Source: Anthoceros angustus
Lineage: Eukaryota; Plantae; Anthocerotophyta
Length of the DNA stretch: 64,000 nucleotides
Reading direction: 5' to 3'
NCBI GenBank assembly: GCA_010909165.1
Contig: MU008157.1
Span: forward strand, 496,001 to 560,000
Shown piece by piece: positions 2,890-30,932 of the stretch. How positions within the stretch are numbered: the stretch's first letter is position 1; every line of letters starts with the position of its first letter. A model generated the notes under the pieces. That model was not told where the DNA came from. It was given only the letters and a program-made list of their open reading frames with translations, and made no database searches. Both the position numbers and the translations under genes were made by a program.

Positions 2890-3026
2890 AAGAAGAAGAA
2901 GAATACATTATAATCCACTTGGACGAAAGTTTCCCGTCATGGGACTTGGTACTTACCAACGTGTACCATGGTGTGCCTAACCTACTTGCACCAAGGGCAT
3001 GGGCATCCACCCCCTTCAGGCACCCC
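2890..3026 (-). mobile_element. SINE-like retroposon (about 130 nt, (CTT)n tail), TSD ATCTAA
   Basis: Homologous to the copies at 3647, 4977, 19135 and 30564. ATCTAA at 2884-2889 and 3027-3032. Confidence 0.8.
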
Positions 3027-3454
3027 ATCTAAGTACCGATGTACCTGATCCGCATGTCCATCCATATTGCAGGGTCGCCGCTCAATAGTTATCAAACCTG
3101 TAGTCGCACACTTGCATAATTACAGAAAATCACGAGCATAGGACTAAGTAGATAGGTAGTTGCTATGAATGTTGTGCCGAGAAGAAAACAATTCGGAGCA
3201 CACGGTAGCGTGGTGTATCCATATGGCCTGGGTTCAAGCCACCTCCTGCTGGTTCAAAGTTTGTGTTCACATCACCCTATTCTCCGTACCCTGGGCATCC
3301 ACTAGTCTCCCGGGGTGTTCGAGGCGGAGCGTCCGAACCCTTTGCTTCAAGCACAATTCAGATGCTATGTAGCAACAAAGAAGCCCAGGAATGAGAGCGG
3401 CCGGACTAATTATGAAGACATGAAAAGATTTGTATGCCTTTATGGACCCAGGTA

Positions 3455-3580
3455 TGAGGTGAGAGAGGCTCGAACTCTCGACCTTAGGATTCCTCTAGAA
3501 GAAGAAGAAGAAGAATTTTATTTAAGTCCACTAAGGACCTAGAGGTATGAGACCTACGCTAGCCAATGCGCCACCACCCC
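3455..3580 (-). tRNA. tRNA-Met(CAT) elongator with retroposon-expanded intron; damaged duplicate (3 nt missing in the D-arm region)
   Basis: Same as 4781-4909 but with small deletions. Either a pseudogene or a noisy assembly copy. Confidence 0.6.
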
Positions 3581-3646
3581 ATGATGTACAAGTGCCTATC
3601 TTCTAATGTAGAGATCAAAACATTTTGAGGTGGAGCTTAATTAAAA

Positions 3647-3773
3647 GACGAAGAAGAAGAATTTTATTTAAGTCCACTAAGGACGGATTCTCAATGGGAC
3701 TTGGTACTTAACAACTTGTATCATGGTGTGCCTAAGCTATTTGCACCAAGGGCATCCACTCCCTTTAGGCACC
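3647..3773 (-). mobile_element. SINE-like retroposon copy (duplicate of 4977-5106)
   Basis: GAAGAAGAATTTTATTTAAGTCCACTAAGGACGGA...AGGCACC on the + strand. Confidence 0.8.
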
Positions 3774-4232
3774 GTGGCGCGACTTTTCTTGGACAGCAGC
3801 AATCCGTGTCGTTGTAGGAAGGAGTTCGTTCCCAAGGAATAGCCAGTCCGTTTCGGCGTTCGGCGATTCTCGTCTTACTGCGTCCGCTCGCCCAACGCAC
3901 CCACTCCTCAGTTCACGTCTAACTACTCGCGACAAACACCGCACAGCCCGGTATGGCCAAGCGTTTAAGGACCCGTTCGCGTCGTTTGTTCACGTTCATA
4001 CTCACATCCTCGTCCGTGCCTCTCTCTATCCAGGTAACCTGGTCCGAAGTCAGGCAGCCGTGATTCGCAAGAAGTACCGGTATCTACCTTCCATTGCCAG
4101 CACATCAATCGCTGAACTGTGTACATATGTAATCGTAACATCACCGGTCGCGAAAGGACGTTGCAGTCATTCCCCTAGGATGATGTGCATTGAGTACCTA
4201 GTTTTGGAGAACCAACTTTTTGCTCTATCTAA

Positions 4233-4366
4233 AGAAGAAGAAGAATACATTATAATCCACTTGGACGAAAGTTTCCCGTCATGGGACTTGGTACTTACCA
4301 ACGTGTACCATGGTGTGCCTAACCTACTTGCACCAAGGGCATGGGCATCCACCCTTCAGGCACCCC
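4233..4366 (-). mobile_element. SINE-like retroposon copy (duplicate of 2890-3026)
   Basis: Same sequence and same ATCTAA TSD as 2890-3026. Confidence 0.8.
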
Positions 4367-4780
4367 ATCTAAGTACCGATGTACCTGATCCGCATGTCCA
4401 TCCATATTGCAGGGTCGCCGCTCAATAGTTATCAAACCTGTAGTCGCACACTTGCATAATTACAGAAAATCACGAGCATAGGACTAAGTAGATAGGTAGT
4501 TGCTATGAATGTTGTGCCGAGAAGAAAACAATTGCACACGGTGGCGTGGTGTATCCATATGGCACAGGTTCAAGCCACCTCCTGGTTCAAAGTTTGTGTT
4601 CACATCACCCTATTCTCCGCACACAGGCATCCACTAGTCTCCCGGGGTGTTCGAGGCGTCCAACCCTTTGCTTCAAGCACAATTCAGATGCTATGTAGCA
4701 ACAAAGAAGCCCAGGAATGAGAGCGGCCGGACTAATTATGAAGACATGAAAAGATTTGTATGCCTTTATGGACCCAGGTA

Positions 4781-4909
4781 TGAGGTGAGAGAGGCTCGAA
4801 CTCTCGACCTTAGGATTCCTCTAGAAGAAGAAGAAGAAGAATTTTATTTAAGTCCACTAAGGACCTAGAGGTATGAGACCTACGCGCTAGCCAACTGCGC
4901 CACCACCCC
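4781..4909 (-). tRNA. tRNA-Met(CAT) elongator with a 55-nt intron (11-nt intron plus 44-nt insertion)
   Basis: Sense GGGGTGGTGGCGCAGTTGGCTAGCGCGTAGGTCTCATA-[intron]-ATCCTAAGGTCGAGAGTTCGAGCCTCTCTCACCTCA. Exons differ from 30848-30932 by only 2 pairing-compatible changes. Confidence 0.85.
4826..4864 (-). mobile_element. 39-nt 5'-truncated LINE/SINE tail inside the tRNA-Met intron, TSD CTAGA
   Basis: Identical to the 3' end of the SINE at 4977. CTAGA at 4821-4825 and 4865-4869. Confidence 0.9.
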
Positions 4910-4976
4910 ATGATGTACAAGTGCCTATCTTCTAATGTAGAGATCAAAAACATTTTGAGGTGGAGCTTAATTAAAA

Positions 4977-5106
4977 GACGAAGAAGAAGAATTTTATTTA
5001 AGTCCACTAAGGACGGATTTCTGTCAATGGGACTTGGTACTTAACAACTTGTATCATGGTGTGCCTAAGCTATTTGCACCAAGGGCATCCACTCCCTTTA
5101 GGCACC
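4977..5106 (-). mobile_element. SINE-like retroposon, 67 bp upstream of tRNA-Met
   Basis: Full family consensus from GGTGCCT to (CTT)n. Confidence 0.85.
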
Positions 5107-8100
5107 TGTGGCGCGACTTTTGCTGACGGCCAGCCGGGCGCGCACAATCCCGTGTCGTTGTAGGAAGGAGTTCGTTCCCAAGGGAATGACAGGCTCCGTT
5201 TGCAGCGTTTCAGGCGATTCTCGTCTTACTTTGCGTCCGTTCAGTTCCAACGCACACACTCCTCAGTTCACGTCTAACTACTCGCGACAAACACCGCACA
5301 GGCCCGGTATGGCCAAACGTTTAAGGACCCGTTCGCGTCCGTTTCGTTCACGTTCGTTACTCACACCTCGTCCGTTCCTCTCTCCACTCACACTACACTT
5401 ATCAGTCTTAAGGAAAGACGCGCGGGTTACACAGTCCGGACCTCCTCCGTCGTTCTACCGGGCCTCTCCGTCCGGGCTCTGCACGCCCTCCCGGAGTCCC
5501 TCCGGCTCACACGTTCCGGTCCGTTCGGTGGCGGGCGCGGCTCGGGCGAGCACGGTCCCGCCACCTCCCCGCACACACCACAACACGTTAGGTCCGTCAC
5601 GGGACCACGATCAATCCCTCCGAGTCGCCGTGCTCGCCGACTCGAGGACTCACGTTAGCAAGAAGACACACAAAGGTGCAAGAACGCGGCATCAACACCA
5701 AGAGAAAGATGATTTATTAGCGTGACCCTCTTATACTACGCCGGTCGGCGTCTTTATTACACCCCTATTACGGTGATGGCATTTCGGTGTACTAATCGAC
5801 CGCCTACCATCCTATTCCTCCTCCTATCTCCTTCGCCGGCGGTGGGGGGGAAGGTCCGAGTTCCGCCTTGGGATTGGTGGTCCAATCTCCCGTCACGGCG
5901 GTTGCGGCGCAATCGGATGATCCGCGAGGCGGACCTCCTCTCCCGGAATCACAGCCGGGTTGGGCTCGGCGGTCGGCGCCGCCGTTACCACGTCATCCTC
6001 CCTGGCCTCCCATGGGTCCCCTCGGTGGGGCCTATATCTGCTCCCCAGCGTAAGTCGAAGGGCTCCTCCTTCTTGCCGAGTCGACCTCGAGGTCCGGTCT
6101 CGACTCAGTGAACTCCGGTCGGCTTATTTCTGAGTCCGGTGGGTCCGGCCGTCTCGGGTTCGGACCTCGGTCCGAACTTATTCAGTCCGGTCCCCAAGCT
6201 CGGACCCCCCACTGTGGACCTCGTCTTGCTAGGTCCTCCTCCCTACCCCCCGACCCTTGTCTTGGTTGGGTTGGCTCCCCTGCACTTTCAGGCCCGTCAC
6301 CTCCCTTCTCCTGAGCGGGTGGTGGTGAACTTACCCTAGGGTCCGTTGCGTCCGCTCCTCTTGGGGCTCTTCTCCTTGCCGTCGTCTCCAAACAGGGCCC
6401 CTAGGGTCCCTGTACTGTCCCCGTGCCCTTCTTCCCCTCAGGGGCCTTCCGAGGGGTCAGGCGTGGTGAGAGGCCTCTGCCGGGGAGCTCGGTGTGGTAA
6501 TAGGCAAAGTCCGAATCCACTTGTTGGATTGCCTCTTCCACGTGTGCGGGCACCGATACTCCCTTCGCCATAGGTGCTCAGGTCTTGCCGGCTTGTTGGT
6601 CCACCTCCCGAGTTTGATATGGGCGGGGCTGCTTCTCATGGCAGGCTGCCTCGGTCACCTCCAGTGTCATGTTGCTCCACTGCTCCAACTCCTCCGCTTG
6701 GTTCATTTGCCGGCTTGCCCGCCATAGCGCGGCGTTCCGCCTTCCTCGGTGGACCAGCGGCTTCTTATGCCTTCCGGCGCCCTCGCCTCTTTGTCCATTC
6801 TTACATTAACTCCGCCATCTCCCTCTCTCGACGGTGCAACCTTGCGGGCGGGCTTCGCCGAGCCCTTCTCCATCTCGGCGGCGTCCTGCTCCTGTTCCGC
6901 CGTCTGCTCCGTCGCCAGCGGGCCGCTCTATTTCCCGGTCGCGTTCCGCGACCATGTCCTGCAGACTACCATTCCTCTCAATGATAGTTTGAAGCTGCAG
7001 CTCCAAAGTCTCCTTGCGGTCTTCCATCTCCTGCCGCTGCTGCTCCACCTCCCGGAGCTGAGTCTGGAGATCCTCCATCTCCTTGTCGCGAACTTCTTGG
7101 GCCTGGCTGGTCCGCGCTTGCTCCGCCACCTCCTGCTCCATCTTCAGGCAGAGCTGGAGGCGCTCTATCTCCGCTCGAAGTCCTGGATTCTCTTGTTGAG
7201 AACCCCTTGCTGCTTTGCCAGCGTCTTGGAGTTGTAACTCCAAGGTGTCCTTCTTGTCCTCCTCCTCCGCCTCCCTTCTCCTGCTTGTGCATACAGGGTC
7301 CCCGATTTCCGGGTCTTGGCCTCAGTGTTTTTGCACGGCTCGTCCGTGCTTGCTCACTGCTCGGCCTTGATTGGCGTGGCTCTAGCCTCCCTCCACGGTT
7401 CGATCACGCCGATAGTGATCGCGATCGGCCGCCGTGGCTTCCGCCTCCTTGGCCACCTTCACGAGCCTCTCGGCTTGGCTCGGTCGGTCAGCTGCCTCCG
7501 CGGTCCGCGCCGCTGCTTGCGCCCGGGCCTCTCGCTTCTGCTGCGCTACCCCTCACTGCGAGGTCCTCGGCCAGCTTGGGCCTCCTTAGCTGCCGGTGCT
7601 CCTCCGGTGAAGGAATTTAGTCCGGTCCTTGCGGATGGACGGACCTCCCTCTCGGCCTCGGCGTTTCCCTTCCTCAATCCGGCCGAGCTTGGCCTTCCTT
7701 CTGCCTCCTGGGCCCCTCAGCTCACGGAGGAGTACCATGCGCCTCGGGTGGCTTCTACCTCCGGGTCTTCTCGGCCATCCCAGAGACCCCAAAGCATACC
7801 GTCCATGGCGGTAGCAGGACCGCCGTGTTTCTTCCACGGCGCTGAGTGAGGCTCCCACAAAGTCCGTGGCGGGGCCGGCATTTCACGGTCCGCCAAGGAC
7901 CTCCATACCTTGTCGGAGTAAGTCGGTGGGTTCTCCGGACCTAATCGGGACCCTTAGGTCCCCGAGGCCGAGCTTCACCCTCCTTGGCCCCAGGCGCGAG
8001 CTCCTTCTCGCCCTTTTTCTCACAGGGCTCGGAGGTGAGGGAGTCCGGAGCAAGCCCTTTTGCCCCTTCACATCGGCAGGACCGGCTCGGTCAGTGCGGT

Positions 8101-9311: not shown

Positions 9312-11678
9312 ATGGCCTCGGGTGGAGATGCCGGGGCTCCGGAGCATGCTGCGGAGGCGGGGGCCGTGAGCAAGAAGGCGGCCAAGAAGGCGGCAATGAA
9401 GGCGGAGAAGCAGCTGCGGCAGCAGCTGGCGGCGGCGGCGGTAGTGAAGGAAGAGGTCGATCCCCTTGCAGGAAACTACGGGGATGTGGGATTCGAGGCT
9501 TTGCAGTCGAAGGAGTTCACTGGTCGCCACTGGACTCCAGTGTCCAAGCTGCTGGCGAAGTTGGAGGGGGAGAGAGTGCTGGTCCGTGGGCGAGCGCAGA
9601 ACGTGCGGGCAAAGGGCGCCATCGCGTTTTTCATCGTCCGGCAGGCGGGGTATACGGTGCAGTGTGTGCTGAGCAAGGGGGAGCACGCCAGCAACAAAAT
9701 GCTGAAGTTCGTTGGGAGCATCAGCAAGGAAAGCGTCATCGACGTCGAGGGCATGGTGTCTGTGCCAGGCACTGCCATAGCCGCGACCTCGCAGCAGGCA
9801 TGGATGGTGTGAGGAGGTATGAAGTTTCGGATGCTCGCTGCCGGCGTGTTTGAACGTTTCGCTTGTGCTGGCAGGTCGAGATTCAGGTCCGCAAAGTCTA
9901 CTGCGTCAGCAAGGCGGAACCAGTGCTTCCTATCAACCCTGAGGATGCAGCCCGGAGCGAGCGTGAGATAGAGAAAGCAGCTGAGGTACAGTACCCGGAC
10001 GAATGACATAGGTGCATTAGGAAAGCCTACCGTATTCAAGTGTTGGCTCACTTTTTTGTTCTTCTTTGTCCAGGAGAACGTCCAGTTTGTTCGTGTTCTC
10101 CAAGACTCGAGACTCAACAACAGGGTTCTCGACTTGCGCACCCCTGCAAACCAGGGGATTTTCCGGATTCAGTCTCAAGTTGGCACGGTAGGGTGAGCGA
10201 TTCGTTCCCCTCTGCAATCAAATTTCCATGTGGATGAAGGACCTTGATGCTAAGGATGCTGTGTGGCGTGTTTGTAGCTTTTCCGGCAATTCCTTCTGGA
10301 TGAAGATTTCGTGGAGATACATACGCCCAAGCTGATAGCTGGAGCAAGTGAAGGAGGGTCCTCGGTTTTTAAGCTCCAGTACAAGGAGCAACCGGCGTGC
10401 CTTGCCCAGTCACCCCAGTTACATAAGCAGATGGGCATCTGTGCAGATTTTGGTCGAGTTTTTGAAATCGGTCCGGTATTTCGGGCAGAAGATTCCTTCA
10501 CCCACAGGCATCTGTGTGAATTCACTGGCCTTGATCTTGAAATGGAGATCAATGGACATTATTTTGAGGTAACAACTCGTACTTGTGAGAATCGCTTCTT
10601 GTGGGGGTGTTTAGGAGCTGACCACTTTGTCTTGCAGGTGATCGACTTGATAGATCGGCTTTTCATAGCCATTTTCGATGGTCTGAATGAGAAATGTTCA
10701 CGAGAACTCCAAGCTATCAACACTCAATATCCTTTCGAACCTCTGCAGGTTACTTATTTCATTTCCGATGTGTAGTGTGTTGTTTGTTTTTCTTTTTGGG
10801 GAAACTGGGGTTCTGACGATGATGTTTGATGGATGTGACAGTATCTGAGACAGACATTACGGCTCACCTTTGCTGAAGGCGTTCAGATGCTGAAGGTACT
10901 TCTGCCTGAGGCTTGATTGAATCTTACCTCATGTTCAGATTTGGCATGCTCTGGAATGTGTTCTGGTCTGATAAAGGATCTTTTCTGGGCAGGAAGCTGG
11001 TGTAGAGATCGATCCCTTGGGAGACCTGAGCACAGAAGTGGAAAGAAAATTGGGTCAGCTTGTCAAGGAAAAGTAAGCCATCACAACCTTTTTGGTATGG
11101 GTATCGATGGTGGTAACAGCGTCTACCATTATTTGCAGGTACCAAACAGACTTCTACATTCTTCACAGATATCCACTAGCTGTTCGCCCATTCTACACCA
11201 TGCCGTGTGCCGATGACCCAAATTATACCAACTCATTTGATGTGTTCATTCGAGGTATGTAACTTTGTTGAAGAGTCTAGCGACATACTCACCTTTTTCA
11301 GTTTGGTGCAGCTTGCAGTTTTGATGGATGACAGCTGCTGACCATTTGGATCACAGGGGAGGAGATCGTTTCTGGTGCTCAACGTGTCCATGAACCTGGA
11401 TTCTTGGCGAAGCGTGCAGAGGAATGTGGAATCGATGTCAAGACCTTGTCAACCTACATCGATTCCTTCAGGTTTCTCTGTTCTTCCTCAAGTTGGCGGG
11501 TCCTTCTTTTAGTTCTCCAAAAAGTTCCATTGACAAATTTGTCGCATGCAGGTGGGGTGCTCCGCCTCATGGAGGTGCTGGAGTGGGTTTGGAGCGCGTT
11601 GTTATGCTCTTCTGTGCACTTGACAACATTAGGAAGACTTCAATGTTCCCAAGAGATCCAAAAAGACTAGCACCTTAG
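9312..11678 (+). CDS. AspRS: Cytosolic aspartate--tRNA ligase, about 10 exons
   Basis: OB-fold [40 protein letters not shown], motif 2 [22 protein letters not shown], motif 3 [15 protein letters not shown], and end [10 protein letters not shown]. Short introns. Confidence 0.95.
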
Positions 11679-13432
11679 ATCATTGACTCTATCTTGACCG
11701 ACATGGGGTCTCACCAAGACATGAGGGCAAACTAGCATTACAAAAGGTGTCAGGACTGAGAGCACCAACTTCCAAGCTTAAACTGTTCCCACAGAAGTTG
11801 CTTAAAGGTTCCCAACCCGGCTGTTCAGCACGGGAGACTGCAGCAGAGAAGCCAATCAAAACGAAACCGTTTCCCAACCCCGCATTCCAGCATGGGAGAC
11901 GGAAGTAGATAAGCCTGTCAAGACGACACAATGGATGCTGCAGCCATCTGCTGGCCCATGGCCCAGGTTATCGAGTCTTAGAGACATTGGTGAGAATCAA
12001 GTGAAATGAGAGCAGGAGGTGAAAACGCAGCTCGCACCTCGCTACTGCTGCTTCTTCTGGAGTTGTGCACTTGCTTTTTATTCATATGGAATGGCTGCTC
12101 CAGCACATCAGACAGCAGGCCAGAGGCGCACGAGGCCCTGACTGCCTGCTGAGTGCCTGGATTTTGGCTTTTCAAGGCAGCGATTCCCCAAGCAGGCCCG
12201 CAGCCCCTCGGGAACACAAACAGGTTCAAGGTCTGCTGAAAGATGGTGTTGCCGTTGGAAGACACGAAGCCAACCTCCAGAGTGCCTTCCACCAGAACAA
12301 GAGTTCCGAGGCCCGCCCTTCCCCCCAGCTAGATATTCTACATGTTGGTGTCGTGAAATACATGTGCAAAGACGACCCGGAGGATCAGTATGTTCAATGT
12401 AGCTTGGGCAAGCTGAACGCAAACGGTTGTTCCGCCACAGCAAACGCCGAATCCTGGTTGTCAGGGAAGAAGATGTCTGCTGGATGGTTGCTCCTGTTGG
12501 ATTCACACTGTCATAGTTTGGACACGAAGCTTAGCATCTCTGGCAAGACCGAAGTCGAATTGCACTCTGTCGTGAACGTGCACCGTTGGTAGGAGATAGT
12601 ATTACAGACGGATTGATCTTTACATGGGGGATGTGACCTCGCAGACTTGCCCGTCTTCCTTGCAATAATGTGATAGTCCCCACTAAAATGATGCGGTGTC
12701 ACCTGTCGGATGCCACCTCCTTTCAGGCATATGATCTGGGACTTGCTTTACAACCAGCTCGACGGTGGACACACAAGAGGTCGATGCTGTACCACTGAAA
12801 GCTTTCTTTCTGCCAGCGTCAGTCTCTATACTGGAAGCTCACAGAGCCGGGTCAACCTCAATTTATGACGAGGAGTTCGTAGGTGCGCATACATATCAGA
12901 ATCTTCGAAATCTTGAATGTGCGCACCTCATACAGTGTGCAGTCTAATCCTTCACCCTCGTGTTTGGCTGTCCGGAATCGGGTCCGGCAGTCCGAGATCG
13001 CTTCCGGTAACAGTTTCATCCGTTTTGAGTTTGGTATGTTAGGTTCAGCTCGGGAGCGAACCTGCCAGAAATTCTTAGTGGCCCTTTCAGGCCGCTAAGG
13101 GGGGTTGGAAAAAGTTTTCAACCAGCAATTGACGCGTCTCGGTATTACCTCACGAACTGCGTCATTGCCCCAAGCGCAAAGATGAAATGTAATGTCCCAG
13201 GGCTCTATTATATACTCTCAATTCGTGTCAGTCAAATCTCCTCACCCAGTATGGGATATATCGACACCCTATAGCATTAAGCCCATTGCCCACATTCTTG
13301 TGAAAGTGTAAAAGGCCCCTCGGGAACACGAACACAAGTCGCTCTTCTTCAGCGTCAGCTCAAAAGGGTTTTGCTTTTGGAGGAAGAAAACTTGCCGACT
13401 GGCTAGCTTTATCATCTAAGGACGGCGTCAAT

Positions 13433-14859: not shown

Positions 14860-16745
14860 TGTACCCTATGGAGAGGCAAGGCCATGTATGGTTCTTTACT
14901 TTTCTTCCATGTGCTTTTGTACTCTACTGAGAGGCAAGACCTATGGTTCTTTGCTTTCTTTCATTCTCCCTTGTACCTTACTGAGGCGCAAGGCTCTGTA
15001 TAAGCAAGGCCATGTATGGTTCTTTGCTATCTGCCTGTGCACGCTACATAAAAAACCAAGTATGGTTTTTTGCTTTCTGCCTCTACACGCTACATAAAAA
15101 ACCAAGTATGATTTTTTGCTTTTTGCCTCTACACGCTGCATAAAAAACCAAGTATGGTTTTTTGCTTTCTGCCTCTACACGCTACACAGAAAGCGTGTGC
15201 ATGCTACACCATCTATGGTTGCACGTTACACCTAGACGCTACACCATCTATGGTTCTTTTGCACACTACACAGAAAGTGTGTGCATGCTACACCATCTAT
15301 GGTTGCACGTTACACCTAGACGCTACACCATCTATGGTTCTTTTGCACACTATACAGAAAGCGTGTGCACGCTACACCATATATGGTTGCACAAAGTGTG
15401 TACGCTACACCATCTATCGTTGCACGTTATACCTGTATGCTACACCACTAATGGCTCTTTTGCTTGCTGCTGCACCATCTATGATCGCTCACTACAACTA
15501 TGCACGTGGTTGCACGTTACATCTGTACGTCACACTATTTATGGTTCTTTTGCTTGTTGCTACACCATCTATGGTTGCTCGCTATACCTATACACGCGCT
15601 TGCACGCTACACCTGTATCCTACACCATTAATGGTTCTTCTGCTTGCTGCTACACCATTAATGGTTCTCTTGCTCGCTGCTACACCATCTATGGTTGCTT
15701 ATACCTGTACGCTACAGAATTTATGGTTCTTTTGCTCGGTACTATACCATCTATGGTCGCACGCTACAGCTATGTAGGCTACACCATCTATGGTTCTCAT
15801 ACTACATCATTTATCATTCATATGCACGGTACACCATCTATGGTTCTCATACTACACCATTTATGGTTCTTTTGCTCGCTGCTATGTAGCGAGCAAAAGA
15901 GCGCTCACATAGGCGTAGAGAGCAACCTTTTGCTCGCTGCTATGTAGCGAGCAAAAGAGCGCTCACATAAGCGTAGAGAGCAACCTTTTGCTCGCTGGTA
16001 TGTAGCGAGCAAAAGAGCGCTCACATAGGTGCTCTCACATAGGTGTAGAGAGTAACCATAGGTGTACACCTATGGTTGCTCTCTACACCTATGCACGCTA
16101 CACCATCTATGGTTCTCATAGATGCTTGCTACACTTAAGCATGTGGTTCTCATAGATGTTCGCTACACCTATGCATGTGGTTCTCATAGATGCTTGCTAC
16201 ACCTATGCACGTGGTTCTCATAGATGCTCGCTACACCTATGCACGCTACACTCTCTATGTATGGTTGTTTGCTCTCCGCTATACCATCTATGTATGGTTG
16301 TTTGCTCTCTGCTACACCATCTGTGTATGGTTGTTTGTTTGCTCTCCGCTACACCATCTGTGTATGGTTGTTTGCTCTTTGCTACACACCTACTCTTGTT
16401 TGCTCTCTGCTATATACCATTTGTGAATGGTTATTTTCTCGTGAATGGTTGTTTGCTCTCCGCTACACACCAACTGTGAATGGTTGTTTGCTCTCCACTA
16501 CACACCAACTGTGAATGGTTGTTTGCTCTCCGCTACACAATTGCCCTCCGCTGCACAAGTGCTCTCCGCTATACATCATTTGTGAATGGTTGTTTGCTCT
16601 CCGCTACACAATTGCCCTCCGCTGCACAAGTGCTCTCCGCTATACACCATTTGTGAATGGTTGTTTGCTCTCCCCACACCTGGTCTCCGCTACACACCAA
16701 CTGTAAATGGTTGTTTGCTCTCCGCTACACCATCCTATGGTTGCA
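14860..16745. repeat. Degenerate minisatellite array (core GCTACACCATCTATGGTT) with a palindromic centre at about 15870-16090
   Basis: Dozens of variant units are directly visible. The Cys/Tyr-rich ORFs here are repeat artefacts. Confidence 0.9.
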
Positions 16746-16765
16746 TTGCTAGCTACGCTCCATAT

Positions 16766-18428
16766 GAAGAAGAAGAATTTTATTTAAGTTCACTAAGTAC
16801 GGATTTCCGTCATGGGACTGATCTGACAGATATACAAAGAGACTATAATGAAATTTAAGCGCTATTCGAGTCGTGAGACTAGTGCTGTGAGGCATAATCA
16901 AATATCCGGCAAGTTGAGAAGTTGAATTTGGTTGGTCCTCATTTCCCACATTTGTTTCAAGCAAACTCCAGCAATAATAGAGTCAGGAAAATTGAAAAAA
17001 CCCCTGAGTGAAGATCGAGCTGTTGTAAATAGATTGATAAATTTATGCCTGATATCTTCATATATGGGATAGTGGAACACAAAGTGTTCCTCAGTCTCAA
17101 CATCCCTGTTGCATAACCTGCAAATTCTGGACTCCTTTGGTGGCTTTGGACGTAGCCATCTATCAGTCTCAATCCTGAGACGGTGAGATCCGATACGAAG
17201 ATGGCCCGTAATCATCCTAAGCCTGAAAGACACAGGGGTGCGGAGATAGAGAGGAAGCACTGGTTTCCTGGAGTTGGAAAGGCTAGGGAAATCCGGGAGA
17301 AACTCGGGAAGACTCTCGAGACAGAATCCAAACTTCTCGAGCCAGGAAGAAGACTGAGCATACCAGCAGGTCTTGTTACCTGAGGAGGCTAACTTTCGGG
17401 AGGACTGGAACGCAAGAAGGAGATATGAGGGAGTGCGGGTGGGGTGATTAGACTGAGCTTCTTCTAAAGAGTAAAGGTGGTATAGGAAGTTGGTTAGGCG
17501 AAATAGACCCTCAAGTTCAAGCGGGAAAGTGGCAAACTCTGCAAGAAAGATGGCAAGGGGGACAAACTTCTTACATGCAATGTGGGGCCGAAGAAAGGAC
17601 GTCTGAACCTCCTCCACCTTGCGCCAGTCGTCGAGGGAGAGATAGGGTCCCCAAAACTCAGCCGCATACATAGCCCAAGGAACAACAACTGTGTTGAAGA
17701 GCCATTGCTGAGTGGGGATGTCTTTGATGTGCATCCTAGAGCATTGTCTCCGAACCCCACAAGCAGATGCCACACCCTAGACAATGCGAGCAGAGGCAGA
17801 GAGCTTCCACTGGAGTGTTGGGCCATAGAGAGTGCCTCCTAGGTAGACATAAGATCGAACAACCTCCACATGTTCACCATTATAGAAGAACTTCAAATTG
17901 TGCTCAACTGGATCCCGCCGGTTGAAAAACATGACCTTGGTCTTCTTCAAGTTCACTTCCAAATCTTTTGCCGTGGAGAAGCGGGACAATGTGTTTAGTT
18001 GCTGTTGGAGGCCCTCAGGAGAATGGGACAAAAGAGCAATGTCATCTGCATACAAGAGAATAGCTATATATACGAAGGAGAGGAGGCAGCCAGGATCCCC
18101 AGACTCCGCAATCCAAGACTCCATGGAGCTCATCCATGAACAAGCCAAAAAAGTTGGGAGAAGATGGATCTCCTTGCCGCACTCCCAAATTGCAAAGCAA
18201 ATCCAAAAGGTCAAAAGCAGCATAGGGAGTGCGGATCTTGGCCTTCACCTTTTCATAGAGAACCTGTATGGCATGTAAAAGATGAGCAGGCAACCCCAAC
18301 CTATGAAACGAGGCAAAGAGCTTCTCGCGGGAGATAGAGTCAAAAGCTTGGTTGAAATCAACAAAACAGACATAAACATGTCTATAATCCTTCCGCCTGC
18401 TCTTGGCCTCGCTCTCTTCTCTCTCTCA
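16766..18428 (-). mobile_element. 5'-truncated, frameshifted LINE (RTE/RTEX-like RT plus C-terminal Zn motif) with a (CTT)n tail
   Basis: VCFVDF..AFDS, GVRQGDPSSP, LLYADDIALL, VNLKKTKVM, and GSHRLRIETDRW...ICRLC..ETEEHF. The last ~50 nt match the SINE tail. Confidence 0.9.
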
Positions 18429-18487: not shown

Positions 18488-18948
18488 GGAAAAGAAGGTA
18501 CTCAAGTGAAGGACTTGCACAAGGGAAAAGAAGGTACTCAAGTGAAGGACTTGCACAAGGGAAAAGAAGGTACTCAAGTGAAGGACTTGCACAAGGGAAA
18601 AGAAGGTACTCAAGTGAAGGACTTGCACAAGGGAAAAGAAGGTACTCAAGTGAAGGACATGCACAAGGGAAAAAGGTTCTCAAGTGAAGGACATGCACAA
18701 GGGAAAAAAGGGTCTCAAGTGAAGGACTTGCATGCAAGGGAAAAGAAGGTACTCAAGTGAAGGACATGCACAAGGGAAAAAAAGGTTCTCAAGTGAAGGA
18801 CTTGCACAAGGGAAAAAAGGGTCTCAAGTGAAGGACTTGCACAAGGGAAAAAAGGTTCTCAAGTGAAGGACTTGCACAAGGGAAAAAAGGTTCTCAAGTG
18901 AAGGACTTGCACAAGGGAAATAAGGGTCTCAAATGAAGGACTTGCGCA
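18488..18948. repeat. Tandem repeat, 13 units of about 36 bp (AAAAGAAGGTACTCAAGTGAAGGACTTGCACAAGGG)
   Basis: Directly visible. No spacers between units. Confidence 0.95.
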
Positions 18949-18963
18949 AAACACCCCGTTTCG

Positions 18964-18985
18964 TGGAGACGCCGGGTTTCGATCC

Positions 18986-19031
<46 letters not shown>

Positions 19032-19036
19032 CCCCC
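18964..19036 (-). tRNA. tRNA-Ala(TGC)
   Basis: GGGGGTGTAGCTCAATTGGTAGAGCGCGCGCTTTGCATGCGCGAGGTACCGGGATCGAAACCCGGCGTCTCCA, with G3:U70 and a TTTT terminator 12 nt downstream. Confidence 0.9.
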
Positions 19037-19134: not shown

Positions 19135-19259
19135 GTGCCTTAAGGGAGTGGATGCCCTTGGTGCAAGTAGCTTAGGCACACCATGGTACAAGTGTGAAGT
19201 ACCAAGTGCCAAGACGGAAATCCGTTCTAAGTGGACTTCAATAAAATTCTTCTTCTTCT
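19135..19259 (+). mobile_element. SINE-like retroposon, 98 bp upstream of tRNA-Ala
   Basis: GTGCCTTAAGGGAGTGGATGCCCTTGGTGCAAG...AATAAAATTCTTCTTCTTC. Confidence 0.85.
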
Positions 19260-19534
19260 CATGACCGCCCTGGCGACTTTAGCTGTGAGCTCAAGACCGC
19301 CCTGGCCACTTTAGCTGTGTTTTGAGCTCATGCTCGACTCCATAGGCTCGACAAGCAGATGCTTCTACAAATTCTGACTAGCTAGCGCGTTGTCGTTCTT
19401 CCACACAAAGGAGGAAAGTAAAGGGCCTTTCGTGGCAACAGCTTGTCTGAAGCCGACACGAGAGAAGAAGTCTAATCTAGTCCACTTGGACGGAATGTTT
19501 TTCACAAATTTTCGTCTGTTGTGAAGTAGGCCAA

Positions 19535-19607
19535 TAGAGACGCTGGGTTCCGATCCCGGTTCTTCGCGCATGCGAAATGCACGCCTTATCACTCCAGCTA
19601 CAGCCCG
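19535..19607 (-). pseudogene. tRNA-Ala(CGC) pseudogene
   Basis: Colinear with tRNA-Ala at 18964, but D-arm, acceptor and T-stem pairing are disrupted. Confidence 0.7.
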
Positions 19608-21167
19608 TGGTACCAGCAGCTTCAGTTTCTCTAGATTCGAACGTTTTTCATAATCTGATTCTAATTTTATCAAACTGGATATGAAGTCATGGACAGCAAC
19701 TGGCCGCCCTGGCCACTTGAGCTGTGTTCTGAGTTCATCCTCGACTCCAGAGGTCCGACGAATAAAGGAGGAAAGGAAAAGGCCTTCATGGCTGTTGCTC
19801 GTTTGGAGCCGACAGAAGTTGGTGAGTGGGATCAGAGGTGCGTTCCGCAACAAACTCCGCAGTCCAAGGGAGAGTGTCAAAGCATCTCTTTCACTTCTCT
19901 CCGCACCATACACCACACCAGTTCCACAAGCCAGCGTGGACCACTACAGATGATGGTTGTCTAGAGTTGTGCAGGTCATTCTTCTACATTCTTGATAGAG
20001 TCCATCTGCACTTCTAAAGCCCTGATGTGGGCTTTAAAATACCTGAGCAATTGGAGTGCCACCCTTCATTTCGTAGCCACTGTTGGCGATGTTGCCAATG
20101 ATTTGGTTTGAAATAAGTATCTTAACAAGCAACCCACAACAGCTACACTAAGGCTGTTTCCGAGTAAAGCATACCTACACATCAAGAATTACCCACTTTT
20201 CAGTCACTGTTACCAATGACTGACATGAGAGCGGAGTCATTCACAAACTACTCGCAAACTTCATTCACAAGCTACTTGCAAACTTCAGTTACCTTTGCTT
20301 CAAAGTCACATGACTAGGAAACCTGAACTTTGCAAGGAAAGAATGGAGATTGGCCACCTGAAGCATCAGTACCCTGCAGTCTGAGTCACAAGCTTTACCA
20401 CGTACGAGAAACAATTGCACTTGAAGCATGGTAGAACATACCTCCCGAGGAGTAAAAGTATCTAAGCTGCAAATTTGATATACACATCCCAGAGGATCCC
20501 GTCGACAGGTTCGCCACTTGAGACTCTGAAACCTGCAACGAACCCTCGTCATGTCAAAACTGTGAGAGTTATGGAGCTAAGGTCTAGAATCAAGGCTTAT
20601 GATAAGAGACGATGGCGACTCCAGCGAAACCCACCTTCATTGCCCAAAAGGATCCCGTGCCCTTAGCAAACCGAGAATAGCTTTTCGTGAAGCAACAGCC
20701 AACAGCAGCGTCTTGACTCCGGGCAAACTATGTCTACACCAACATTTTTCAAACAGCACGAGTTAGCCACGTGACAAATCAATGCAGCAACTACAAAAAC
20801 AAAACAAGCTCTCGAGGGTTAGGGAGGTACCAAAGACTTCACCCCAACGTCTGATTGTGCTGGAGGGCACCACATAGTCCTTCCATTTATGCAACATGCG
20901 CTGTATTGCTGGCACAACTTAACTCATGTGCTTCACTTATACTTCTACGGGATGCATGTTCTACAGTAACTGGCTGAGAAGTGTATGATGTATGAGGTTC
21001 CAGCTCTAAAAAGTGGGTGATGTGTTAGCAAATAACAGCCGGATCTAGCACTGGTTCAGTAATGGTCCTTGGTTGAATACCGGGCTTGTAGGGTACTTGA
21101 GAGGTCTTGTCCATGTGGTGTGGGCACTCTGCAATATCTGGAGGTACAGGGCCGGGTCTATAAAGCA

Positions 21168-21580
21168 GGCTGAGGATTGATTGAATGTTCCTTTACGCCC
21201 TGGAATGTGCTCTGGCTGATGAAAGGGGTAAGATTTCATGAGCAGGAAGCAGGAGTGGAGATTGATCCCTTGGGAGACTTGAGCACAAGAGTGGAAAGAA
21301 AATTGGTACAGCTTGTCCAGAAAAAGTACGACATCACAACCTTTTTGGAATGGGTAACGATGATGCGTTTGACAGGGTAAGGTGAAGCCTTGCGGTAGAA
21401 GGGCATGCTGACATTACCCTTGATAGATTTGATTGGATTCATCTTCATGGATTTGATGCTTATAGGAACGGTGTGCTAACAGCGTCAAACATTGTTTGCA
21501 GGTGCAGAGCATACTCCTTCTTGCGAGAAACAGACATCTACGTTTGAGAAACTGTGTGTTCTTTCCTATGCTGTCACGAT
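21168..21580 (+). pseudogene. Decayed partial duplicate of the AspRS gene (exon plus flanking introns)
   Basis: [24 protein letters not shown] matches the exon at about 10993-11072. Flanking intron sequence matches 10905-11140. Confidence 0.8.
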
Positions 21581-25039: not shown

Positions 25040-25495
25040 CGGATATACGTATACCCATTGCCTATACGTGGTAATTCATGCAAGCATTTGAAGAGCTTAC
25101 ATGCCGAGCTTATGGCGGCCCTGCATAAATGTATCAATGTCGCTTGCTCTCAAAGGGGCACGCCTTCATCCCTCGCAATTGAGATATATGGGCCATGGGC
25201 AAGGCCTTTTCTAAGTGGGAGGGAGTACCACTGCTTACGAAGAGGGTTGGCCTCATCTTTCATGTATTTTGGCTTTCTACAAGCAATGGGTGTCCATCGT
25301 CCTGCAGCGGGCATTGGCCAATGTGGTGCAGAGGATGACGGCAAATGCAGCGCAAGCGGCTTCTTCGGCACCGGTGGTGGGTAGGTCCTTTCGTATCCCT
25401 GATTTTGATATCCCATGGTCTGGTGTCCTCCTAGAGGTTGTTTCGCCCTTCTCTTGGGGTAGATGGGTTTTTCCATCTCTTTTTCATAATAAAGT
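25040..25495 (+). mobile_element. Decayed 3' end of an RLE-type (CRE-like) non-LTR retrotransposon
   Basis: Frameshifted FIP/LAIEIYG and FYKQWVSIVLQRALANVV, ending near AATAAA. Confidence 0.6.
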
Positions 25496-25779
25496 GTCCA
25501 GGGCTACTCTCAAGACAACTTCAATCAATTCAATGAAGGTCTTACACATCTTTCGGCCCTTGTTGGAAACAAACAAGCTCAAAGCTGAGGGCGTTTTTGT
25601 ATGGGCGAGAGGAGCCAGCAAACCTTTCCATTAACAGAAAAGAAGCGGATTGAAAATGGCTATTTTCAAAATAGCCATTTTGAAAATTATTTCTAAAGAA
25701 AATCCTCAATCTCAATCCTTAATCTTGCAATGCTTCTTGGCTAAAAATAGAAGAATCTTGGAATGCCAGCGTTAAAACA

Positions 25780-25960
25780 AACTTCACTTCTCCGGTTGCC
25801 TCTATCCACCTAGACCACATTATATTAGAACAGAACTTGATAAATTTATCAAAGTTTGTAGCCAACGTCCCATAAGTGTCCAAAGCAAGCGGATGAAGAA
25901 GTGATCTGACTGCATTCCCCTATACTTAGTTATTCTTCCTAAATACGACATTGTAGGTGC
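25780..25960 (-). mobile_element. RLE-type retroposon fragment
   Basis: TKYRGMQSDHFFIRLALDTYGTLATNFDKFIK. Confidence 0.6.
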
Positions 25961-26439
25961 AGTCAGTGACTTTCAGTAGGGAGCTTTGCTGTTCCTTTTC
26001 ACCACGACCCCTAAGGCCGCCTTTGGATGTTCTCTGCAGGATGAGCTTTTCCCATTAAATTTTTCCCTCAATAAACATTGGCTTTTCATATTATTCCAAT
26101 GTGTCTCACACGTTTGGTTTCCAAACTTTACGTTTTCATTTCAAAGACATTCTTTTATTTTCCTTTTGTTATTGCCCTTTCCATCATGTGGATGAGTACG
26201 TCTATTTGTAGCGTGTGTGTTTCTCGATACCTGCCCCAATGCAGCAATAATGCTCTCATAACTCTAATTTCACGTGGCTAGAGTTGTTGCGGTTATTTAG
26301 TTAACCCTCTTGGATTATTTAATTAACCTATCACCAGGTAATGATTTAACCTCAAGTTAGATGACTTATATATAAAAGATCAATTTTTTCATATTCAATT
26401 AATTATCTCTTGCATTTTTTCCTGTAATTTAACATGGTA

Positions 26440-27190
26440 TGGGAGCCATCGAAAACTCTATAACTAATATGACTGGGACAATTTGTTGCTCTAAGTACAC
26501 TGGTAGGCATACATCCTCTGATGCATGTGTCCTGGTATATTTAATGAACATTTGCCTCTACACATTCTCCAAGTTCATCAAGGCTTGTGCCAAGAAATAC
26601 CACAACCGCAAGAATGGGGTTGGTCTCCCCCTTTCCTATATGATGGCTTTCTTCACCCTGTAGAGGACATTGACCAACGCAGTGTACAGGATGACAACAA
26701 GCGTAGGGGATGCAGCATCTTTGGCACCAACGGTAGGTAGGCCCTTTCATATCCCCGGTCGCGACATTCTCAACACAATGGGTAGATCGGAGATAGGCAG
26801 TCACGGGGGCTAGTGCTTGTGCCCTCCAGAGGATTGTTCCCCTTTGTCTTAGGATAGATAATATTTCGTACCTTTTTTCTTACATAAAGTCTCCACGTTT
26901 TCCTTACACATTCACCAGCAGATCAGATGGTCCTAACTATGAATCGAGAAATTTCTAGAAAAAAATTTCACTACTCTCCAGAAATGGTAGCAGATGTGAT
27001 GGTTACTCACCTACACGGTGAACACGTATTCCTAAACTATCCAAGTTGGGGAGTAGCTGGAGCAATGACTTTCAAGGTTACTAAGTATAGGGGAATGCGG
27101 ACTGGCCACTTCTTCATACTGCGTGCCTTGGAAACTTATGGGGCATTGGCTAAAGACTTTAATAAATTTATCAGGGTCTTTCATTCAAAT
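26440..27190 (+). mobile_element. Two further RLE-type retroposon fragments (26440-26890 and 26983-27190)
   Basis: FSKFIKACAKKYHNRKNGVGLPLSYMMAFF and VADVMVT...KYRGMRTGHFFILRALETYGALAKDFNKFI. Confidence 0.6.
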
Positions 27191-28031
27191 TCAAAATGTT
27201 GCCAAGGTGAAGTTTTTGTATGATTGTTTTGCCCTTCCTATTTCATTTGGAGTTGGTCTGATTCTATGTTTTTGGCAGATTTCGAACCCATCATTGTGCC
27301 AAGTGATTGTGATGAAACGTCTGAAGTGCAACAGGACAGAAAGGTGGCCATATTGCCATCTCTGGATATGGTATTGCAGAATGGGAATGGCATTGGAAAT
27401 TCAAGCAGTTTTGAGCAGAGTCTTGCTGATACCTCCCGAGAACGGGAGTTAGATAGAGAGAAACAGGAAAGGGAGTTTCAACGGCAAAAAGATTTAGAGG
27501 TACTGAATGAGAGGCAGAGGCGCAAAGCTGTTGAACTACGAGTGTCCAAGCAAAGAGAGAAAGCTCTTGAGATTCAGAGGCGAAAAAATGTGGAAAGAAG
27601 ACAAGAACACTTGAAACATCAAGAAAAACTCAAACAGCAGCAGAAAGAGCAGTAAGAGATTCGAAGATTGTAGTGGAAAAGGCAACAGCAGCATAAGATT
27701 GATAATGGGCCTCGAAGGGTGCCCACTGCCACCCAGGAAGACCCGTCAGGATCAGTAAGTAATCTTATCCTCCCTTTATTACTTATAGTAGAGTGAAAAC
27801 TAATGTTTGTGTTTGATTAGGTTGTGAACTTACAGGAAGATGAACAATTTCTTCGAAGCCCTCAGCTTCATCGATTTCTGGCCAACTATGATAATGTTGG
27901 ACAAGTTGTGCCAATCAAACCAAGTGGTCGTGAAAATTACATTTTCAATTTGTATAATTGTACAGTCAATTTTCCAAAATAAGGTGAGTATCTTTGCTTA
28001 AGTATCTGTGCATCTATTACCTAACGTATTA

Positions 28032-28640
28032 CCACCCAGGATGCCATTCATGACGTTATATTTGCAATGACTTGTGAAAGTGGTTATATGGCTTGGAGGG
28101 AGCGTTGGTATGCTTTACATATGGAGCCAACGGTCAGAGCCGACTTGTACCTTGTCCGGGGTGACCAAGTCTCAGTCGCAGACGTGGTGGTTATTTATCC
28201 TACATGGGATTCCACCTTTGAATAGGTTATCCTAAACCATCCAGGCTGGGCGGCAACTAGAGCAGTGGCTTTCAAGATTAGGCCTACAAATAGTTAAGGA
28301 AGAGGAGGATGCATCACCTACAATTGTATCTTTGTGGATGATCATCGTGGAAAAGACCCATTAAAGGGAAATTGAGACCCGCTGTTTAAAGAACGTAGTG
28401 AAGTAGGAAAGGATCAACCTTATACCGTGACTCCGGGCGTAATAAGCTTTGGCGCAAGACTTGATAAATGCATTGAAATCCTTAGTCATCGCCCCATATG
28501 TTTCGAGGGCGAGAGGAATGAATTGGTGGCACGTTTCCATCCCGCTATATATCTTGACTTTGAGAATCGCCGCTCCGACAGCAGCCCAACTTGGACAGTT
28601 AGTGATTACCTGTGCAGAGTTGGTGTCAGGAGAGACAAAG
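28032..28640. mobile_element. Two convergent RLE-type retroposon fragments (28032-28283 +, 28361-28640 -)
   Basis: + strand: QDAIHDVI..RE..VRADLYL..VADVVV. - strand: HQFIPLALETYGAMTKDFNAFIK...FFKQRVSISL. Confidence 0.65.
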
Positions 28641-29129
28641 GAGGGGAGGGCGAGGAGCGGATCCTCTATCTCTCCTTCGCACTCGCTGCTGCCTAATATG
28701 GAAACGGTTTTATGGAACACAATGTACGAATATACATTTCCTATTGACATAAGTATGTTTCAAGTCTCATGGAACACAACGCATGCATACACATTTCCTA
28801 TTGACATAAGTATGTTTCGAGTAACACAACGTTACACAAGTAGTATGTATCTTCACTACAAACCCTTCGTAAAATATTGTACTTAGTTGTATTATTTTCC
28901 CTCCCTTAAAAATTATTAGCTTAAGGTGAGAACTCTCCAAAAATTTCTCGAATCCGATATTAGGGGAGTTGATATCTGCCTTCGCATGGAATACATGCAC
29001 TCCCTTTTCACTCTCCAACCATTGATTCTAGATCGTTCATTGAGAAGCTATTATCAAACAGACAAACTTGTTGGGGTGGGACAAGAGAGGAGAACAAATG
29101 CATTAGGCATAATTAAGAACTAGGGTCTC

Positions 29130-30490
29130 CAGCAATAAGCAATCTTACTAGAGTGTCGAGCAAGACTTTGCAATAAGCAATTTTACTAGAGAGTCAAGCG
29201 AGACGTTGCAATAAGCAATTTTACTAGGGTGTTGAGCAAGACGTTGCATTGCAGGTCTAGCGATAGGGTCACAATGTATACAACTTGCATAACGAGAGAA
29301 CTTGGGATGAACAAAGAGGTTCGCATATAAGATCCATATATAGTTATAGCTCACGACAAGAGTAGTTCACTGGCAGTGGCAAGAGTAGTTCACTGGTAGC
29401 GGCAGGAGTAGTTCACAGGCAGTGGCAGTTCACTGAAATTCACAACTCATCTCAACATAATGTTTTTAAGAGATCGTAGTTGGCTTGATTATGTCGAAGA
29501 TGGCTGATGAAGCAGTGGTCAGTCAACTTGTTGTGGAGAAGGCTGGGGAAGCAAGACGGCTGTAGTTTGCAACATCTGCTAACCAACCGTCGTATGCAAG
29601 AATGGTGGAAAAAATATCTGACGAAGACTCCATGGACCAGGATACGGAAAGGTATGAAGCACCAGCAGATAGAGAGGTTGAGGATGACGCAGATAGTAGG
29701 TTTTGCTTAAATGGCTATGATTCTTAAAGCCTAGTGAGAAGTTGTATGCTATAAAGTTTTAAGGGCTTGAATCTTCAATCAAAGAGAACCCTTGGATAAT
29801 TATTATCCATAGTTCCTAGAGAATTTTTTAATCTTTAGACATGGATAGCTAGCTAGTTGTCTTAAAAGAAAAGGATGTCCATTGTGTAGGATGGTGAGCC
29901 AATGTGGTCACGAAATATCTACCTAAAAAACTTTCAATACTTCTTCTTCTTGTGGATATTGCAACCACTACCACGGGTTTAGGCTCATCACCAGAGCCAG
30001 GATAATGGGTGAGCAAAGGATGAATTGGCTAAAAAAGAAAAAGAGAGTCCGGTGTGCAAGGTTGTATGCACCTCTCACACATTGTCCATCAACATGCACT
30101 AAACTCGGAACATTCGACAACTGAGCCTTATTCTGTTATCCAACCAAAACACTCGTTGCGATTTGACCCCATGAGATGCGTCCAAGATAGAGCCACATTC
30201 ACAGGTGAGAAGTAAGGAAGCCACTGGCTGAACCAAACTGGAAGCACATTGCACGAATAGTACCTTGGGTGGTAATACGTTTGACCCCATGAGATGCGTC
30301 CAAGGTAGAGAGCCACATTCACAGGTGAGAAGTGAGGAAGCCAATGGCTAAACCAAACTAGAAGTACATAGCTCTTGTGAAGGTTGTACGTAACCTAACA
30401 AATTAACTTGTGAAGTGAGGAAGCCATTGGCTGAACCAAACCGCAAGCGCATTGCTCTTGTGAAGGATGTAGGTGACCTAACAAATTAAA
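29130..30490. repeat. Short local tandem repeats (about 38-bp x3, 21-bp x3-4, and 75-120-bp units), probably a TE interior
   Basis: Repeated GCAATAAGCAATTTTACTAG, GAGTAGTTCACTGG and GAGGAAGCCATTGGCTGAACCAAAC. Confidence 0.7.
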
Positions 30491-30563
30491 ATTTTGGTGA
30501 TATTGAGGTACTCATAATATATCTCCATTTGGCCTAATAAGAACGTCATGATTAAGCATCCTT

Positions 30564-30677
30564 GGAGTGGATGCCCTTAGTACAAGTAGGGTAGGCATAC
30601 CATGGTACAAATTGTTAAGTACCAGGTCCATGACGGAAATCCATCCTTAGTGGACTTAAATAAAATTCTTCTTCTTC
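30564..30677 (+). mobile_element. SINE-like retroposon (slightly 5'-truncated), 170 bp downstream of tRNA-Met
   Basis: GGAGTGGATGCCCTT...CCTTAGTGGACTTAAATAAAATTCTTCTTCTTC. Confidence 0.85.
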
Positions 30678-30847
30678 ATAACTAGATTTTGGTACTACTT
30701 AGATACTCTTAACTTATTTAAATAATATTTTTCATATTTTAAAATTATATAGATTTCTAATTTTGAATTATATAAAAATTAAACATAATTTTTAAGATAA
30801 ATACATATACGGAAAAATTTTACCCTATCACATTGAAGAGGAAAAGA

Positions 30848-30932
30848 TGGGGTGAGAGAGGCTCGAACTCTCGACCTCAGGATTTCTCAGTAGCTATGAG
30901 ACCTACGCGCTAGCCAACTGCGCCACCACCCC
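30848..30932 (-). tRNA. tRNA-Met(CAT) elongator with canonical 11-nt intron
   Basis: Plant tRNA-Met(e) cloverleaf. Intron GCTACTGAGAA follows position 37, and TTTT lies immediately downstream. Confidence 0.95.

Follow-up and report, generated by a model that had tools for sequence, protein, structure and literature searches.

Introduction

Insertion beside genes transcribed by RNA polymerase III (Pol III) is the textbook case of a transposon safe haven in a compact genome, and it has been documented for the long terminal repeat (LTR) elements of yeasts and for both long interspersed nuclear elements (LINEs) and LTR elements of amoebae. The TRE5, TRE3 and NLTR elements of Dictyostelium are LINEs of the apurinic/apyrimidinic endonuclease (APE) type which, in a gene-dense genome, are found beside tRNA genes, upstream as well as downstream, without a target motif (PMC5006619). 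Ty1, Ty3 and TRE5-A are targeted through contact with the Pol III machinery (PMC5911963, PMC5006619), and in the case of Ty1 the insertion window covers several hundred bp and is not a point (PMC5911963). LINEs of the NeSL group are located within tRNA genes: NeSL-1_TV in tRNA-Pro, and LIN15_SM and LIN25_SM in tRNA-Arg and tRNA-Glu (PMC4640811). No retroelement of plants with Pol III genes as its target is named in the reviews and full-text literature that we searched, an absence that is not proof. Here, we describe a 64-kb stretch of the genome of the land plant Anthoceros angustus (assembly GCA_010909165.1, contig MU008157.1, positions 496,001 to 560,000), referred to below as the window, in which a LINE and a family resembling short interspersed nuclear elements (SINEs) end in the same 3' tail and are found at tRNA genes.

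The system resembles the Dictyostelium TRE and NLTR elements, being LINE-based and located near tRNA genes on both sides of them, without a target motif and in a gene-dense genome. However, TRE5 inserts strictly ~50 bp upstream and TRE3 strictly ~100 bp downstream of a tRNA gene, whereas here one family occurs upstream, inside and downstream, at 0–535 bp and in both orientations. Moreover, unlike in Dictyostelium, a SINE partner makes up most of the copies, and the host is a land plant. As with yeast Ty1 and Ty3, the insertions lie beside Pol III-transcribed genes, a presumed safe haven, but the Ty integrases are tethered to AC40 or TFIIIB and act only upstream, while the elements described here are a LINE and a SINE that would use target-primed reverse transcription and are found on both sides of the gene as well as inside it. 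As neither the distance nor the side is fixed, we do not class the family with the precise systems of the TRE or Ty3 kind.

The NeSL and LIN elements differ in another way: they carry a restriction-like endonuclease and use one site in one tRNA species, whereas here the endonuclease, as judged by relatives of the LINE, is of the AP type, two tRNA species are involved and the positions vary. Because of this endonuclease and of the variable sites, the family is not NeSL-like. Its closest counterparts with respect to the tail are the stringent LINE/SINE pairs, for instance those of the plant RTE or L1 lineages (Ohshima 2012). In these pairs, too, both partners have in common a 3' end of ~50 nt that could form hairpins and a microsatellite tail, and the SINE greatly outnumbers the LINE (PMC3472496). 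The pairing itself does not differ from that of such pairs. The plant tails listed by Ohshima do not include (CTT)n, and no association with tRNA genes is described for those pairs (PMC3472496).

Results

A LINE and a SINE-like family with a common 3' tail

Copies of the family were located by blastn and an nhmmer profile search of the whole window, and genes for tRNAs and other non-coding RNAs were called over the same 64 kb with Rfam and ARAGORN (Table 1). The SINE-like family is ~125 nt long, and its 3' tail of ~55 nt, which ends in (CTT)n, is common to it and the LINE. The LINE and SINE tails are 89–95% identical over 40–55 nt and terminate in (CTT)3–5, and a 32-nt tail pattern had seven matches in the window against zero expected. 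The tail also terminates a second LINE copy, L001, which lies on a Logan contig from a different run and has 75–78% protein identity. Judged from these sequences, the LINE and its SINE-like counterpart make up a partner pair of the stringent type.

The tail permits hairpins to be drawn, but the consensus structure obtained with RNAalifold from a small set of 8 sequences is weak (-1.3 kcal/mol, one compensatory pair). The possibility that (CTT)n is the target of insertion instead of a part of the tail was rejected, as the 5' junctions have no CTT repeats. One copy, that at 2892, belongs to a diverged subfamily and is a long form of ~215 nt, in which the repeated sequence runs to ~3110. In the sequencing run X1, described below, the end of this form is marked by a fall in summed depth from 2,300 in the bin 3030–3114 to 13 in the bin 3115–3199, and by summed depth the long form accounts for about one tenth of the family. 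No Rfam family was found in the body of the SINE or in the head of the long form, even at E<=10. By eye, the head near 3025–3045 is reminiscent of the 3' portion of plant 5S rRNA; Rfam gave no 5S match there.

Position of the copies relative to tRNA genes

The two tRNA-Met genes at the first tRNA-Met locus are copies of one 1.35-kb duplication, and the window thus has three independent intact tRNA loci: tRNA-Met locus 1, tRNA-Ala and tRNA-Met locus 2. With the tandem duplicate discounted, the family has six clear insertions and a seventh, probable one, and all seven lie 0–535 bp from a tRNA or tRNA-like gene (four loci, the fourth being a decayed copy of tRNA-Ala). All tRNA genes of the window are on the minus strand.

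Three insertions are found at tRNA-Met locus 1, all in the orientation of the gene: the 3' end of the SINE at 3650–3772 is 69 bp upstream of the 5' end of the tRNA, a tail-only insert is inside the intron (0 bp), and the SINE at 2892 is 345–430 bp downstream. At the tRNA-Ala locus, the SINE at 19135–19258 is in the opposite orientation, with its 5' end 98 bp upstream, and the LINE is in the same orientation 535 bp downstream. A satellite with a 36-bp unit sits exactly between the 5' end of the LINE and the 3' end of tRNA-Ala and fills most of this gap, so that the distance is ~75 bp when the satellite is discounted. At tRNA-Met locus 2, the 3' end of the SINE at 30556–30677 is 170 bp downstream, in the opposite orientation. 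The seventh, probable insertion is a tail fragment (19463–19504) located 30 bp downstream of the decayed tRNA-Ala copy, in the same orientation. Against the SINE profile alone, it is not significant (E 5.3), and for this reason it is counted as probable only.

The original prediction had been that a LINE and a SINE-like family with one tail occupy all three intact tRNA loci and no other place in the window. Both the shared tail and the occupation of the three loci were borne out, and no further copy was found in the 64 kb at E<0.1 with nhmmer --max. The six distances that it gave were reproduced within ~10 bp (0, 69, 430, 98, 535 and 170 bp), leaving the picture unchanged.

Empty sites and the independence of the insertions

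A comparison of the window with itself by blast showed that the only sequence common to the three tRNA loci is that of the tRNA exons, while the flanks are unrelated. Thus, the idea that the tRNA loci with their SINEs are copies of a single segment was rejected. Two empty sites were identified by alignment. The 55-nt intron of the tRNA-Met gene at 4781–4909 consists of CCTCTAG, a 41-nt tail with (CTT)n, and TAGAGGA, and in the other copy of the duplication the insert at 3496–3538 is flanked by CTAG and TCTAG. The paralogue at 30848–30932, which is empty, has an intron of 11 nt at the same place, one base past the anticodon. When the insert and one CTAG are taken out, an 11-nt palindromic intron is left, equal in length to that of this paralogue, and the event is therefore a tail-only retroposition into the body of a tRNA-Met gene in the sense orientation. 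The second empty site is in the paralogous tRNA-Ala unit (19505–19830), from which the SINE at 19135–19258 is missing. On these alignments, the copies are true, independent insertions.

The decayed tRNA-Ala copy is a part of a local segmental duplication in which the upstream region was duplicated as well; for this reason, an origin of this copy and its tail fragment as a template-switch chimera was rejected. The 1.35-kb tandem duplication took along the tRNA-Met gene and all three inserts of locus 1, and therefore these inserts are older than the duplication. No common sequence motif was found at the insertion junctions in the window, which argues against plain sequence specificity.

The sense strand of the intron insert has no run of four T. 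As, in addition, the exons of the gene at 4781–4909 are intact, this tRNA-Met with its 55-nt intron may still be transcribed and spliced. In the copy at 3455–3580, three bases of the D-arm are lost.

Chance expectation

We estimated the chance that a random site falls within 535 bp of any of the three tRNA loci, with the tandem duplicate collapsed. For one site, this probability is 0.056. It follows that P is 3e-8 if the six insertions are taken as independent events, and 1.8e-4 if each of the three loci is counted as one event. With the insertable DNA restricted to 15 kb, the corresponding values are 1.7e-4 (six events) and 1.3e-2 (three loci). Within this window, the proximity of the copies to tRNA genes far exceeds what chance would give. 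When multiplied by the ~1,800 windows of the scan from which this one comes, the three-locus value of 1.8e-4 becomes ~0.3 and fails a post-hoc correction, whereas the six-event value of 3e-8 survives it.

Abundance and copies outside the window

The abundance of the family was assessed in the Logan contigs of one public run, X1 (592,621 contigs, 97.6 Mb). As X1 contigs showed 0 differences from the unique parts of the stretch, the run is of the same genotype; it is not independent and cannot provide empty sites. On the SINE or tail parts of 1500–4030, there were 1,980 X1 contigs, and the summed word depth on SINE and tail parts was 21,000–47,000, compared with 12.7 on unique sequence. Depth is not a copy number and gives the abundance as an order of magnitude only: across the genome, the copies of the family number some 1,000 or more. 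The expected number of copies per window is ~1.3 (1,980 contigs in 97.6 Mb), compared with the seven independent events observed here, in a window whose number of tRNA genes is also unusual. Such an excess in a tRNA-rich window fits the association. Strict targeting would then require several copies at every tRNA gene. No X1 contig fell on 3200–3454 and 3540–3624, though adjacent unique DNA was present at a depth of 12.7; a filter could cause such gaps.

Two exact tail motifs had 0 matches in JGI metagenome contigs and 0 in GTDB genome contigs. In the second LINE copy, L001, the stretch after the tail (1012–1112) can be drawn as the T-arm and the 3' strand of the acceptor of a tRNA, with one change in the T-loop; it is too short for calling by Rfam or ARAGORN.

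The LINE remnant and its relatives

The LINE of the window is frame-broken and spread over three frames. It retains the palm of the reverse transcriptase (RT) with YADD, the thumb, a degenerate CCHC knuckle, the 3' untranslated region, the tail and (CTT)n. As it has neither the endonuclease nor the first half of the RT, the element is 5'-truncated. An imperfect repeat of ~10 bp is present on both sides of it and is a possible target-site duplication.

Relatives of this LINE were found in ferns, a lycophyte and Coleochaete. They combine an Exo_endo_phos (APE) endonuclease and an RT in ~1,100 aa with a C-terminal CCHC knuckle, and the C-terminal block SH-x-L-x-IE-x-GR ... C-x2-C ... H-x4-C is conserved from the LINE of the window to the fern, lycophyte and Coleochaete proteins. 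A microsatellite tail is compatible with RTE, RTEX or algal L1 elements (PMC3472496). In an exhaustive protein search, the matches of the same family were two fragments only, P0001 and P0003, on contigs of 1.1 and 1.7 kb. A word-based protein search with the 291-aa open reading frame (ORF) of the LINE, P0001 and peptides read through the SINE returned nothing except P0001 itself. Neither the protein searches nor the contig look-ups recovered a full-length LINE of this family with ORF1 and endonuclease. Three further candidates (L003–L005) were rejected as members, as they belong to LINE families distinct from this one, differ from it in their tails and lack a tRNA in their vicinity.

Features of the window

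Table 1. Features of the 64-kb window; positions are counted from its first nucleotide.
Feature	Position	Strand	Basis and remarks
tRNA-Met(CAT) with intron, locus 1, copy A of the tandem duplication	3455–3580	-	Rfam tRNA, 29.8 bits; D-arm deletions
tRNA-Met(CAT), locus 1, copy B	4781–4909	-	Rfam, 44.5 bits; ARAGORN with intron; exons intact, intron 55 nt
tRNA-Ala(TGC)	18964–19036	-	Rfam, ARAGORN; T4 run 14 nt downstream
tRNA-Met(CAT), second locus, native 11-nt intron	30848–30932	-	Rfam, 48.7 bits
Decayed tRNA-Ala-like paralogue	19535–19610	-	Alignment; 80% column identity to tRNA-Ala
SINE copy, diverged subfamily (79% identity)	2892–3110; 125-nt core 2892–3024	-	blastn, nhmmer; duplicate 4234–4364 and beyond
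SINE copy, ~123 nt	3650–3772	-	blastn, nhmmer; duplicate 4980–5105
SINE copy	19135–19258	+	blastn, nhmmer
SINE copy	30556–30677	+	blastn, nhmmer
Tail-only insert (severely 5'-truncated retroposon) in the tRNA-Met intron	3496–3538	-	Pattern, blastn, alignment; duplicate 4822–4864
Probable tail-only fragment, 2892-type tail	19463–19504	-	12-nt exact core and CTT repeats
LINE remnant, 5'-truncated, frame-broken	16766–18428	-	Pfam RVT_1, 1.4e-8; zf-RVT weak
Satellite, 36-bp unit, 13 copies, 462 bp	18488–18949		TRF; 93% matches
Tandem duplication, 1.35 kb	2675–5384 (2675–4026 vs 4020–5384)		Self-blast; 94.4% identity
U4 small nuclear RNA gene, full-length	13043–13183	-	Rfam, 102 bits

ARAGORN in its default mode missed the tRNA-Met genes at 3455–3580 and 4781–4909, and miscalled that at 30848–30932 as a selenocysteine (SeC) tRNA. 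The latter error was due to the intron, as ARAGORN was run without its intron mode. At relaxed thresholds, ARAGORN gave 107–199 calls, which were noise only.

The window is dense in plant genes, among them two pentatricopeptide repeat (PPR) genes with E/E+ motifs, a gene for a Phi_1/EXORDIUM protein, and genes for ClpC-like and CDC48-like ATPases. The two PPR-E/E+ genes (33307–36285 on the minus strand and 44111–47692 on the plus strand) are intronless, inverted with respect to each other and ~76% identical in DNA over 1.6 kb. Plant U4 genes are transcribed by Pol II. By blastn and nhmmer, no copy of the LINE/SINE family is present within several kb of the U4 gene of the window, which is one negative comparison only.

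A complex of tandem repeats with periods of 29–71 (15869–16731) abuts the 3' end of the LINE. Its recurring minus-strand motif, GTGTAGCGGAGAGCA, resembles by eye the 5' part of tRNA-Ala without the D-loop, and Rfam at E<=10 found no family in the tandem repeats at 16.3–16.8 kb. Farther away, the region 48495–61981 has a strongly C-rich strand, with a GC skew to -0.46, and is composed of large direct repeats at 85–91% identity (for example, 48495–50058 vs 60824–61981, and 55344–57058 vs 57047–58694). Short dispersed or inverted repeats at 68–83% identity are located away from tRNA genes (10948–11112 and 21197–21365; 25832–25930 and 27080–27179; 27019–27173 and 28462–28616), and these repeats in the spacers without tRNA genes are probably other small transposons.

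Discussion

We lean, with modest confidence, towards a real bias of this LINE/SINE family to integrate near tRNA genes. In the mechanism that we propose, the LINE machinery, which in intact relatives comprises an AP-type endonuclease and an RT, would recognise the structured tail of ~55 nt and the (CTT)n of both RNAs. Once bound to the tail, the LINE proteins would nick the target and start reverse transcription from it (target-primed reverse transcription), for LINE and SINE RNAs alike. Frequent early stops of reverse transcription would leave tail-only inserts of ~40 nt. Integration would be biased to roughly +/-0.5 kb around Pol III-transcribed tRNA genes, the gene body included, as if the LINE particle were drawn either to the marks of an active Pol III gene (TFIIIB, TFIIIC or Pol III itself) or to the nucleosome-free, fork-stalling DNA at such genes. 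Active tRNA genes impede replication forks. Fork barriers are treated in general terms only in a review of transposons and host DNA replication (PMC5371812). The loose window and the two orientations are easier to reconcile with open or fork-stalling DNA, or with a flexible tether, than with a rigid one, and recognition of a DNA sequence is a less likely cause of the proximity to tRNA genes. We infer that the bias acts at integration and not through later retention, that it is valid genome-wide, and that tethering is its mechanism.

Several observations weigh against such a bias. The association comes from a single window, which was picked post hoc from ~1,800 (1,815–1,867 windows in the scan). 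All copies are old, with a divergence of 6–21%, and represent survivors only, and the inserts of tRNA-Met locus 1 are older than a duplication that is itself 5.6% diverged. With ~1,000 or more copies in the genome, many may lie away from tRNA genes. The 335 bp of sequence flanking the second LINE copy, L001 (235 bp on the 5' side and 100 bp on the 3' side), contains no recognisable tRNA, a result that is weakly negative, because three of the seven events in the window lie farther from their tRNA than this flank reaches. Two more distant relatives of the LINE, on plant-like metagenome contigs (L004 and L005), have no tRNA within 11 kb; their tails are other microsatellites. Finally, the distances of 0, 30, 69, 98, 170, 345–430 and 535 bp show no fixed spacing, unlike in the known tethered systems, and both side and orientation vary among the seven events (two upstream, one inside and four downstream; five in the same and two in the opposite orientation). 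Of the original prediction, the partner pair, the independence of the insertions and an association beyond chance within the window stand. A strict reading of the TRE or Ty3 kind is not supported by this geometry.

The first alternative to be weighed is retention: insertion would be nearly random, and copies would survive only in harmless DNA, such as the spacers around redundant, multi-copy tRNA genes. The density of genes in the window (an AAA ATPase, two PPR-E+ genes, an EXORDIUM-like gene and ClpC) and the age of every copy are as retention would have them, and under the 15-kb restriction of insertable DNA the three-locus P rises to 1.3e-2. However, the other repeats of the window occupy spacers without tRNA genes (at 10.9, 21.2 and 25.8–28.6 kb), which indicates that tolerated space exists elsewhere in the window, yet without a copy of the family. 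Moreover, one event is inside a tRNA gene, a tiny target that retention cannot enrich, and tolerance of neutral DNA alone cannot explain an insertion within the gene body. Overall, we consider retention an unlikely explanation of the pattern.

Still less probable, in our judgement, is a generic preference of the machinery for open or AT-rich chromatin, for a loose nick-site motif, or for earlier copies to which new ones would home, with tRNA genes being one such place among several. That insertions occur on either side of the genes and in either orientation suits a regional rather than a point preference, three inserts are crowded within 0.9 kb at tRNA-Met, and contig joints in X1 show copies beside other copies elsewhere in the genome. 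On the other hand, the junctions have no shared motif, no insert is found in the (CTT)n tail of another copy, and there is no copy either in the AT-rich spacer at 26–30 kb, away from tRNA genes, or at the U4 gene. The last reading is coincidence: a common repeat and a cluster of tRNA genes would simply meet in one of ~1,800 windows, and the selection of that window would have made the overlap conspicuous. The post-hoc choice and the corrected three-locus value of ~0.3 speak for coincidence, and the six-event P of 3e-8, which outlasts the correction for the number of windows, speaks against it. We consider it the least probable of these readings.

Returning to a bias at integration, we propose only tentatively, and as a broader claim, that a LINE of land plants evolved tethering to the Pol III apparatus or to its chromatin state, so that tRNA genes, and perhaps 5S genes as well, receive insertions of the LINE and its SINE parasite within them and close by. 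Such targeting would then have arisen independently for a third time, after yeasts and dictyostelid amoebae, and for the first time with a highly amplified SINE that inherits the targeting of its LINE.

If true, this would be a case of convergent evolution of Pol III-gene targeting in a third eukaryotic supergroup, and it would provide a natural system in which to study how Pol III chromatin is read by a LINE particle that uses target-primed reverse transcription. A further gain would be an explanation of tRNA genes with expanded introns in the genome of A. angustus, whose tRNA annotation will miss or miscall genes that bear these inserts.

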